DNA of 64,000 bases, from contig RHPI01001507.1 in assembly GCA_009103225.1 (NCBI GenBank), positions 124,001 through 188,000 of the forward strand. The letters run 5' to 3'. The position numbers were made by a program, and so were the translations under genes. Positions 45,601 through 47,885 of the stretch are shown piece after piece (the stretch's first letter is position 1; the number at the start of each line of letters is the position of its first letter). The notes below the pieces were generated by a model. It ran no database searches. It was not told the origin of the DNA and saw only the letters and a program-made list of their open reading frames with translations. The DNA comes from Chlorokybus atmophyticus. Taxonomy: Eukaryota > Plantae > Mesostigma and Chlorokybus algae.

Positions 45601-47885
45601 CCACGCCCATACCTAAGGAGAAAGGAATAAGTTGTGTTAACGCCCACACCAACTCAACAGCAACATGTCACTTGGTGTTAACATACTTAACAAAGGTGGC
45701 CTGCTGATTGTATGGCGGGGTGGTGAGGTCCTGCAGCGCAACAATCTCCCCGGCTTTTAACAACGCCTGCAGGTCCGGATCCGTCGGCACTTGCGCGCCC
45801 ACCTCGAGACCCTGCCAAGAGGCATGCATGCGTGTTAGTATTGTGCCACTCCATCACGATCCTCACGTCATGCACACACATGTGTGTGTCTGTATGTGTG
45901 CATATGCTCATGCGTATGCGTGCAAGTGTGTGTGGAGTAGCATTACCTTCATGGTGGTGGGGCCGGTGGTCACCATGAGGAGGACGACACCGTGGTCCGA
46001 GTGAACCTCTTTGAGGAGGCCAAGCTGGAGCTCGAGGTGGTTGGACGCGAGGGTCAGCGCCTCATTGAGCTTCTGCTGCGTACTCATCCCTGACGACGAC
46101 GTGATCATATTTAATGCGCGTAGTGCCGACTGCTGCCGCCTCATCTCTATCTCTATCACCTTCCTCTCCCTGATGTCTGCCTCCAGTTGCTGAAGAGCGG
46201 ACACGGGGTCAGCAATGCCAACATCATGTTATCACATACACAAGTTGGGGCTTACCTGTTTCACTGAGTCGAGGTTGTGGCTTTTGAGGGCGAGTCGGGT
46301 GGCGAGTTTGGTGGCTTCCGCAAGCTGGGCCTCGGCCTCACGACGCCGGAAAGATATTTCCAACCGCTGCGCCGTCTCCCTTAACGTCTGACTCCTCAAC
46401 AAGTACGCCCAACACTCGCATATCACCACCTATTGTGTGATACACACGCTAATGGGTCACTCAATTAAGTGCAAGCAAGCCAGCCTGTGTCCTGCATATG
46501 ATGCTATGCGAGACTTTCGAGATAACATGACATACATGGAAGATGGCGATTCCAAAGTGGAAGAAGAGACGGGTGAAGGTGACAGGACCGATGATCTCAA
46601 AGAAGTTGACGCCATGGCCTGTGTTGTGGAGGACCGCGAATATTATATGCTGGATGATGAGGAAGAGTGTCCCCGGCCACATGCACCACGCGTCCTGGTA
46701 CACTATCATCATTGTGTGCGCGCTGAAGAAAAAGAAGTGCATCTCCGCCAACCCGCGCATTTGATATCTGCTTACACACGCGCGTACACGCCTTAGCAAC
46801 ATACACAATTGCCTCTCATGAAGGAGCACCAACATTGACAATCTCATACATGTGAAGGGCAACGTAGGCTTGCAAGCACACATTGGCGGCGCAACGAGTG
46901 AAGAATGAGGTTGGGAGAGTCATTTGGCATATCCAGAAGAAGGCGAGGGTGATGGGGCCGATTGCGAGTGTGACATTCCATGTGCCGTACATCCGACCGA
47001 GCGCGAGCGCCAGCAACATGTGCAGGATGAGGAACACCTTCATTAATCTGTCGCCTCGCGCGTACACTCCCAACATCACCGCCTCCACCTGGGACTTTGA
47101 TAAGCCAAAGTTCTCCTGCTCGCGTATTGGAAACTGCGCCTTCTTCTGATCGTGATCGTCGTCTCCGTGACCATCACTAAATGTCCCATCCGACACGCCT
47201 GCACAGTGACAACGTTGGCACATTTACTGGCTGTGCGCACACGCTTGGGTGCCTGCTTGAGCATTAGCAACAAGGAAATGGTACCATTGTAGGAAGAGTT
47301 GTTGACAAGCTTATAGCCATTGGTAGTGGCGCCATTGCTTTTGGGAGGCATGTACCCAAGCTGCTGGTGGAATAGAATATGAAGTGCGTTTTGATATACA
47401 AGAATACACTGCCAAGGTGAAAGGTAACTCAATGCGAGTGGGAGAGCTCACAATACCTCTGAGTCTGATGGCACATCACTAAGACTCGGCGGAGCATCCG
47501 ATATTTGCTCCTGCACAGCAACGCCCACATCACATTGAAGACAGCGAAAAGCATTGCTGGACTCGTGAGGCCAAGAGTAGTCCCAACATGCTGGCAGTAA
47601 AGCACATATGCCCACAAGATCGCAGCTTACCGGATTCGAGGAAAGGCCAAAGTACCAAGCGTCCGCATGTGTGATGGAAAGTCTAGCCAGCTGCTGCAAA
47701 TAAGGTTTGACGCATCCTGTCATCTTTGCCAACCTGCTGTTGAACCCTCCTGCACTACCACCACTACCTCCTCCTCCTCCTACTGGTCTTCCCCCTCCTC
47801 CTGAGACTTCCTTGTAAAGAGGCTGCTGAGCAGCTGGGCCTCCTTGTTGGAAACACCCGTGCAAAGCTGCCCACACAACCGGCAT
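42623..47885 (-). CDS. Membrane-bound hybrid sensor histidine kinase (multi-TM sensor - GAF-like - HisKA - HATPase_c - REC - REC), 18 coding exons, ~1150-1200 aa
   Basis: Exons (minus): 47885 or 47723-47631, 47510-47457, 47360-47285, 47198-46850, 46767-46536, 46429-46256, 46189-45947, 45811-45687, 45612-45504, 45415-45302, 45198-45095, 45016-44994, 44906-44820, 44700-44662, 44583-44234, 44145-44056, 43924-42885, 42767-42623. All phases close. Motifs: FLANMSHEIRTPMNGVIG; [17 protein letters not shown]; IQDTGIGI; [13 protein letters not shown]; REC2 [20 protein letters not shown]. Confidence 0.93.

Follow-up and report, generated by a model that had tools for sequence, protein, structure and literature searches.

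A histidine kinase gene of probable bacterial origin, with a predicted six-helix membrane sensor, in the streptophyte alga Chlorokybus atmophyticus

Input domains built of six transmembrane (TM) helices are known from several signalling proteins. MHYT (PF03707) combines six TM helices with conserved His residues near the outer face, is found on kinases and on GGDEF/EAL proteins, and is predicted to sense metals or gases. The histidine kinase PilS uses its six TM segments for direct interaction with the single-pass membrane protein PilA (PMC6058289). The 6-TM kinase RegB/PrrB of Rhodobacter detects quinone within the membrane, its gene being co-transcribed with that of SenC/PrrC, a Sco-like, membrane-anchored periplasmic copper protein of thioredoxin fold (PMC9147068), and CyaC of Sinorhizobium meliloti has a 6-TM anchor that carries two haem B groups and reports the redox or quinone state (PMC10463352). 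Here we analyse a gene located on a stretch of 64,000 nt from Chlorokybus atmophyticus (contig RHPI01001507.1 of assembly GCA_009103225.1, positions 124,001-188,000 of the forward strand), the whole of which is called the window below. It is best explained as the gene of a functional hybrid histidine kinase of this streptophyte alga. The evidence points to transfer of the whole gene from a non-cyanobacterial bacterium, with introns and extra domains probably gained later, and the 6-TM module of the protein is best described, on the strength of its predicted structure, as a new sequence family with a general 6-TM signalling-anchor fold.

An exhaustive HMMER search of 1.84 billion proteins with the middle sensor exon of 77 amino acids (aa) identified the gene product as the annotated protein P0001 (1237 aa; eukprot jgi/Chlat1/8591 Chrsp86S07991, Chlorokybus atmophyticus), which holds the spliced sequence of the three sensor exons. 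These exons (47198-46850, 46767-46536 and 46429-46256, minus strand) have GT-AG borders throughout. The whole coding region (48380-42623, minus strand) comprises 19 coding exons and 18 introns, 17 of them GT-AG and one GC-AG, the exon map being built from transcript joints and checked by translation. The transcripts were assembled contigs from three public runs (X1, X2 and X3) belonging to two studies. In all three runs the contigs cover exons only and skip 46768-46849, 46430-46535, 46190-46255 and 47199-47284; eleven further introns are also skipped at their predicted borders. All 15 joints listed occur in X1 and X2, and the first 12 in X3 too. When joined, the transcript-supported exons give one open frame that is identical to residues 17-802 of P0001 except for one absent Gln (residue 127, near position 47360 of the window, minus strand), which looks like a 3-nt shift of the splice junction relative to the annotation. 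The annotation also carries 11 additional residues in the HATPase domain, where the contigs of X1-X3 splice a GC-AG intron (44146-44233, minus strand). This splicing makes the HATPase domain collinear again with its bacterial homologues, and the public gene model is probably wrong at this place.

The X3 contig represents a diverged copy of the kinase gene, 95-99% identical to positions 44000-48500 of the window and deposited under the same organism label. Its intron positions are the same, and it probably derives from another strain or a cryptic species of Chlorokybus. The 39 differences listed comprise 37 synonymous and two non-synonymous ones; eight of them fall in the sensor exons, seven of these in the exon for TM6 and the exit helix, and all eight are synonymous. 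Taken with the transcripts, the excess of synonymous differences indicates that the gene is expressed and under purifying selection and is not a contaminant. Separately, the 5' end of the X3 contig has a 3-nt deletion at 47767 and 36 replaced letters near 47157-47283.

P0001 consists, in order, of an N-terminal extension, the 6-TM sensor, a divergent GAF domain, HisKA, HATPase and two receivers, encoded in the window as follows.

42623-48380, minus strand: whole coding region, hybrid histidine kinase Chrsp86S07991 (P0001, transcript joints, translation).
47285-48380, minus strand: most of the N-terminal extension of about 175 aa; exons 48380-48333, 47906-47631, 47510-47457 and 47360-47285.
46850-47198, minus strand: sensor exon 1, with the end of the extension (its last residues, at the start of the exon), the pre-membrane helix (R-G-D-R), TM1 (His212), TM2 and most of TM3 (Arg254, Gln262, His268).
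46768-46849, minus strand: GT-AG intron of 82 nt, splitting a codon between His268 and Tyr270; joint 46767>46850 in X1, X2 and X3.
46536-46767, minus strand: sensor exon 2 with the core motif, namely outer loop (Glu277, His279), inner loop Y-Q-D, TM5 (Gln308, His309, Asn317), outer loop and start of TM6 (His339).
46430-46535, minus strand: GT-AG intron of 106 nt.
46256-46429, minus strand: sensor exon 3, remainder of TM6, predicted to run unbroken into a long cytoplasmic signalling helix (model helix 158-219).
45302-46189, minus strand: coiled coil and divergent GAF-like domain; exons 46189-45947, 45811-45687, 45612-45504 and 45415-45302.
44662-45198, minus strand: coiled coil and HisKA, the dimerization and histidine phosphotransfer (DHp) domain (E 9.2e-22); exons 45198-45095, 45016-44994, 44906-44820 and 44700-44662.
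45015-44995, minus strand: H-box S-H-E-I-R-T-P.
43859-44583, minus strand: HATPase_c catalytic domain (E 6.2e-25); exons 44583-44234, 44145-44056 and the start of 43924-42884.
43424-43675, minus strand: receiver 1, more divergent than receiver 2 (Response_reg, E 3.9e-09).
42626-43198, minus strand: receiver 2, canonical (Response_reg, E 6.8e-35), with a C-terminal Ala/Ser/Arg tail; end of exon 43924-42884 and exon 42766-42626.
42625-42623, minus strand: stop codon.

In P0001, Pfam recognizes HisKA at residues 628-693, HATPase_c at 741-865 and Response_reg in two stretches, and the features of a HisKA-family hybrid kinase (H-box, the N, G1 and G2 boxes of HATPase_c and the acceptor Asp of a receiver) can be read in its motifs. 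Residues of about 400-600 form the divergent GAF domain, which has a Pfam GAF match at E 0.094 over positions 7-131 of the 133 of the model and a similarity of 0.97 to GAF clusters in the features of the ESM Atlas. This insert is missing from the closest collinear bacterial relatives; other members of the family have a PAS or GAF domain at the same place. The N-terminal extension (residues 1-175) is Gly-rich, is likewise missing from bacterial relatives and gave no Pfam match even at E ≤ 10. The membrane module occupies residues of about 200-358. Its AlphaFold2 model, based on an alignment of 91 sequences (A1), has a predicted local distance difference test (pLDDT) score of 96.2 and a predicted TM-score (pTM) of 0.89, and contains six TM helices and a long exit helix (helices 12-48, 51-71, 76-96, 101-117, 123-142 and 158-219 of the model), with TM6 running on for about 40 residues as a cytoplasmic helix. 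As the kinase is necessarily cytoplasmic and the charges obey the positive-inside rule, both ends of the module should lie inside and the TM1-2, TM3-4 and TM5-6 loops outside.

A preliminary description of this DNA had proposed that three exons between 46256 and 47198 are spliced together, that they encode about six hydrophobic segments with intramembrane His residues, and that a GAF-like region, HisKA, HATPase and two receivers follow. These proposals were borne out: the exon ends are exact, the translations agree and the joints are present in the contigs of X1-X3; the model has six TM helices with five conserved His; and Pfam matches the downstream domains, the GAF-like one weakly. The same description held that the sensor is neither CHASE, ethylene-binding, phytochrome nor a CKI1/AHK1-type extracellular loop; the lack of a Pfam or NCBIfam match agrees with this and sets it apart from other curated input domains too. 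No Pfam-A family matched the TM region in P0001, in the separate open reading frames (ORFs) of its exons or in 91 relatives (E ≤ 1), a profile search with this region returned no NCBIfam model and no PDB sequence, and neither CHASE nor the phytochrome PAS_2/GAF/PHY set matched P0001 at Pfam E ≤ 0.01.

The 77-aa exon retrieved 172 relatives at E ≤ 1e-3 (129 at E ≤ 1e-10, too many to be due to chance), and the entire domain of about 200 aa aligns in all 172, nearly always at the extreme N-terminus (phmmer E 1e-68 to 1e-22). Every relative that is named or placed in a genome is bacterial, most metagenomic sources being unchecked. Sensor identity to the alga is 40-55%. There were 89 full-length matches, with 41-56% identity and E values down to 1.7e-63, and a scan of one genome per prokaryotic species yielded 135 loci, 80 of which were kept for analysis. 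The kept loci come mainly from soil and freshwater assemblies and belong to Acidobacteriota, Planctomycetota, Gemmatimonadota, Myxococcota, Armatimonadota, Verrucomicrobiota, Bacteroidota and Abditibacteriota. The outputs of the family include HisKA and HisKA_2 kinases, hybrid kinases with Hpt, GGDEF, GGDEF-EAL, GGDEF with HD-GYP, and SpoIIE/PP2C phosphatases. PAS or GAF domains frequently stand between the 6-TM module and the output, and many bacterial members have no other input domain.

Mean column identity across seven phyla is 47%. Thr225, Arg254, Gln271, Gly274, Glu277 and Phe283 are invariant in the family, and at least 90% conservation is reached by His212 in TM1, Gln262 and His268 in TM3, His279 and Tyr292 in TM4, Asp294, the W-P-G motif, Gln308, His309 and Asn317 in TM5, and His339 in TM6. 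The conserved set inside the membrane thus amounts to five His, one Glu, three Gln and one Asn. The outer TM3-4 loop holds a further His with 87% conservation, at whose position the alga has Arg. The alga keeps all five His, Glu277, the three Gln, Asn317, Arg254, Asp294, T-W and W-P-G, and deviates from the family by G258N, F264Y, H273R, T284S and K335R. The family consensus reads H-I-Y-Q-L/M-H-G-L-x-E-M-H-F ... V-Y-Q-D-W ... Q-H.

In 54 of the 74 bacterial loci with enough upstream sequence (of the 80 kept), a six-frame search with a hidden Markov model found a gene for DUF6436 (PF20029) directly upstream of the sensor gene and on the same strand. DUF6436 had emerged as a recurrent neighbour when the flanking ORFs of the 80 loci were clustered; no other cluster occurred in more than five of them. 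The partner gene lies about 650 nt upstream of the sensor gene (for example L031:3264-3947 and L003:3300-3953), its end frequently overlaps the start codon of the sensor, and the two are often translationally coupled. Loci with the partner span seven phyla, and the five bacterial rows closest to the alga in the sensor tree all have it. DUF6436 belongs to the thioredoxin-like families of Pfam. A single TM helix at its N-terminus precedes a near-invariant juxtamembrane stretch (F-W-Y-Q-D-W-Q-Y..P-T-P-R-P), and four Cys (in C-P-C, R-Y-C and Y-G-C) and the cis-Pro loop are invariant. Its predicted structure (pLDDT 91.5) resembles the periplasmic thiol-disulfide oxidoreductases of the TlpA, ResA, CcmG and DsbE type. 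The linkage of DUF6436 to the sensor is new here, and our literature searches found no description of this gene, of the 6-TM sensor family or of a function for DUF6436.

The evidence on origin comes from protein searches with length windows, from lists of best matches and from a sensor-domain tree built without plant kinases. In the full-length sensor search, P0001 is the sole sequence of eukaryotic source among the matches with a source shown. The bacterial protein P0005 is collinear with it over the 6-TM module, HisKA, HATPase and both receivers, with 49% identity in the sensor and 35% over the rest, and lacks only the N-terminal extension and the GAF insert. The best 120 matches of the kinase core are all bacterial or metagenomic, at 42-58% identity, with no eukaryote other than the query itself, and two of them bear the same 6-TM domain. 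A maximum-likelihood tree of the sensor domain places Chlorokybus within the bacterial radiation, and no cyanobacterial member was found among the 80 loci kept. The collinearity of P0005, the bacterial best matches of the kinase core and the nesting in the tree together point to a transfer of the whole gene, most readily explained by a donor from among the bacteria of soil and fresh water and by a later gain of the 18 introns, the extension of about 175 aa and the GAF-like insert. The gene shows the usual marks of transfer from a bacterium to an alga: it is nested among bacterial sequences, no homologue was seen in related eukaryotes, and it is integrated in the host, with introns and transcripts. 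We hold the identity and origin of the gene, as stated here, to be highly probable.

Several expectations of the preliminary description concerned this wider family. Many bacterial homologues do share the E-M-H-F motif, and the pattern given there, (I/F)YQM.G..EMHF...Y(Q/R)(D/N)W...HH, is essentially the family consensus. The domain had been expected in bacterial histidine kinases and in chemoreceptors; it is present in the former, whereas no chemoreceptor, recognized by the signature of methyl-accepting chemotaxis proteins, occurs among 224 family members. The nesting in bacteria and the 18 introns agree with the proposal that a bacterial module was acquired and then intronized, but it is the whole kinase gene, not the sensor alone, that looks bacterial. 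An undescribed receptor class of the plant lineage, as had been suggested, is too broad a description for what is so far one gene specific to the Chlorokybus lineage among the eukaryotes searched. Haem or metal binding through the His residues, also put forward there, is plausible as a hypothesis.

How the sensor might work is suggested by its buried polar residues. His212, His268, His279, His309, His339, Glu277, Gln262, Gln271, Gln308 and Asn317 are near-invariant within the bilayer. In the predicted topology most of them would cluster near the TM3-TM4 loop in the outer half of the bilayer, with His268, Gln271, Glu277, His279, Asn317 and His339 forming an outer layer and His212, Gln262, Gln308 and His309 a layer at mid-plane. 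So many buried His, Glu and Gln residues speak for a bound metal, a haem or a small polar or redox ligand and not for a plain anchor, and binding of a cofactor or metal by the predicted site is plausible. These residues would form a buried site, either for a bound cofactor or metal or for the sensing of a redox-active ligand at the outer face. Any alteration of this site would move TM6, which, as a straight signalling helix, would lead into the GAF and DHp domains; as TM6 and this helix are continuous, its movement would control autophosphorylation and, by way of the C-terminal receiver, the His-Asp relay. The sensor of most bacterial relatives would work with the membrane-anchored periplasmic DUF6436, and the presence of this partner upstream suggests redox or metal sensing at the outer face. 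As the partner is periplasmic and of thioredoxin fold, thiol-redox or metal status appears to be the likeliest class of signal.

We give this combined reading, a transferred bacterial hybrid kinase with a buried polar site read through TM6, a probability of about 0.7; the general mechanism taken by itself has roughly even chances. Several observations weigh against it. The algal sequence sits in a polytomy of the sensor-domain tree on a long branch (1.25), so that no donor phylum can be named. The kinase core is nearer to other bacterial hybrid kinases (up to 58% identity) than to most sampled 6-TM members, and domain shuffling before or after the transfer may therefore have occurred. Glu277 and His279, two positions apart on the same helix, probably point in different directions. 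The partner is missing from 20 of the 74 loci, including all 11 of Gemmatimonadota and one acidobacterial subclade; it was not found in the algal window (tblastn with eight partner proteins, best E 0.29), nor was any eukaryote among the best 120 partner homologues. Consequently, the sensor does not strictly require the partner, and the alga may respond to a different signal. A more far-reaching version remains tentative, and we would sooner bet against it than for it: the 6-TM module may constitute a new class of cofactor-holding transmembrane sensors for redox or metal status, acting in bacteria as a two-protein receptor with the periplasmic C-x-C thioredoxin-fold DUF6436, and Chlorokybus may have captured the module without the partner and, with the added GAF, re-tooled it into a receptor on the surface of a eukaryotic cell, with the redox or metal status outside the cell as its signal.

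Other functions for the 6-TM domain have to be considered. It might read a partner membrane protein within the membrane, as PilS reads PilA, with no ligand or cofactor of its own, the partner being DUF6436 in bacteria and another protein or none in the alga. The top matches of the predicted structure are indeed the 6-TM kinases of the PilS type (TM-score 0.73-0.74 over 207 residues), whose six segments contact PilA directly (PMC6058289), and DUF6436, often translationally coupled to the sensor, offers one TM helix and a near-invariant juxtamembrane stretch. However, a quarter of the bacterial loci, and the alga, are without the partner and yet keep every conserved polar residue, and so dense a buried His/Glu/Gln set would be unusual for plain contact between helices. 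Although we think it rather unlikely as a full account, this explanation is compatible with the buried polar site preferred here and does not exclude it. The domain would be less likely still to bind quinone and report the redox state of electron transport, as RegB/PrrB does. The quinone-site heptapeptide of RegB, G-G-x-x-N-P-F, occurs in none of the 224 members, no cytochrome b of the fumarate-reductase or succinate-dehydrogenase type is among the structural matches listed, and nothing puts the algal protein in an energy-transducing membrane. What speaks for quinone is that the six TM helices of RegB bind ubiquinone and its gene is co-transcribed with that of SenC (PMC9147068), an arrangement paralleled by DUF6436 and the sensor, and that the cyclase CyaC owes its response to quinone to a 6-TM anchor carrying two haem B groups (PMC10463352). 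It is quite improbable that the six helices merely anchor and dimerize the protein while sensing in the alga falls to the cytoplasmic GAF-like domain. Small ligands are often bound by GAF domains, and the closest collinear relatives of the algal protein lack this insert, but a mean column identity of 47% in seven phyla and invariant intramembrane polar residues go far beyond what an anchor needs, the eight listed X3 differences in the sensor exons are all synonymous, and many bacterial members have no other input domain.

As for origin, an ancient receptor inherited vertically in the green lineage, or derived from the plastid, and lost everywhere except in Chlorokybus would be consistent with the long algal branch without a resolved donor, and with the many introns, which imply a long residence in the genome. 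It would require many independent losses, though, and it has to contend with a sensor and kinase core 50-58% identical to soil-bacterial proteins, with the lack of a cyanobacterial member among the 80 loci kept and with that of any other eukaryotic sequence among the matches with a source shown; we judge it very improbable. Bacterial contamination or a chimeric assembly, to which the bacterial best matches might seem to point, is refuted by the splicing seen in transcripts: the gene has 18 spliceosomal introns, canonical at their borders, which are removed in contigs of independent studies, and a diverged strain has the same intron positions. We give it practically no weight.

The surroundings of the kinase gene were also inspected. 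The next gene downstream (38100-40076, minus strand) resembles an intron-containing short-chain dehydrogenase with a V-T-G-S-N-S-G-I-G motif, which fits a normal eukaryotic gene neighbourhood. Just upstream of the 5' region of the kinase gene, positions 50000-54000 form an AT-rich island (G+C content of 0.32-0.40 against about 0.53 around it) without long ORFs. A long GA-type microsatellite at about 36170-36520, with E-R or R-E repeats in several frames, includes one ambiguous base.

For plant evolution, the gene is a clean example, verified by transcripts, of a bacterial sensor kinase taken over in full and domesticated by a subaerial alga whose lineage is among the earliest to diverge in the streptophytes. 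It adds to the case for soil bacteria as a source of signalling genes in streptophyte algae. Being lineage-specific, it has little bearing on land-plant receptors in general. If the re-tooled surface receptor outlined above proved true, it could have helped an early-diverging streptophyte alga that lives on land to adapt to soil. For bacterial signalling, the analysis reveals a sizeable uncurated sensor family in at least seven named phyla, with kinase, c-di-GMP and PP2C outputs, which makes it a good candidate for a new Pfam entry. Its intramembrane His/Glu/Gln set and its DUF6436 partner suggest, as a hypothesis open to direct test, that redox or metal status is sensed at the outer face.

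Set against the known systems, the algal kinase shares with those carrying the established plant and algal inputs (CHASE, ethylene-binding, phytochrome and the AHK1/CKI1 loops) the form of a hybrid kinase with receivers feeding a His-Asp phosphorelay, whereas none of these inputs was detected in P0001 and its sensor and kinase core are closest to bacterial proteins. MHYT was rejected as a relative: neither a Pfam match nor the M-H-Y-T-G-M motif was found, and hhalign, with probabilities of 0.6-6%, showed no threefold repeat within the module. The absence of the heptapeptide led us to reject RegB membership as well. The gene arrangement of RegB and SenC parallels that of DUF6436 and the sensor in the 54 loci; RegB, in contrast, is not a hybrid kinase, and SenC has a Sco-type C-x-x-x-C where DUF6436 has C-P-C and two further Cys. 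In CyaC the haems are reportedly held by a tetra-His signature, according to a 2019 paper. The family described here has five near-invariant His on five different helices, and their predicted depths, at mid-plane and in the outer layer about 6-7 residues apart, would fit two stacked haems poorly.

Closer likenesses are structural. A Foldseek search of the PDB gave nothing at E ≤ 0.001, and a feature search of the ESM Atlas with the 77-aa exon gave weak leads only (≤ 0.87), including 6TM_PilS and MASE6/7, none of them confirmed by sequence. PilS (PF25323, 6TM_PilS) resembles the module in using six TM helices as an N-terminal kinase input, and the predicted models superpose over 207-208 residues with a root mean square deviation of 3.3-3.5; in sequence, however, none of 91 family members matches PF25323 at E ≤ 1, and the conserved intramembrane His/Glu/Gln set did not match the PF25323 model. 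Among solved structures, a search independent of Foldseek ranked the adenylyl cyclases AC5 (8sl3) and AC9 (6r3q) and the diguanylate cyclase ImcA (8wcn) highest, with the whole model covered and Z-scores of 11.0 over 210 residues, 10.9 over 195 and 10.4 over 206, respectively, although a Z of about 11 in a helical bundle may mean just a common arrangement. Their sequences show no similarity to the sensor and their output domains are different; what they have in common with it is a six-helix bundle whose last helix continues as a signalling helix to the catalytic domain.

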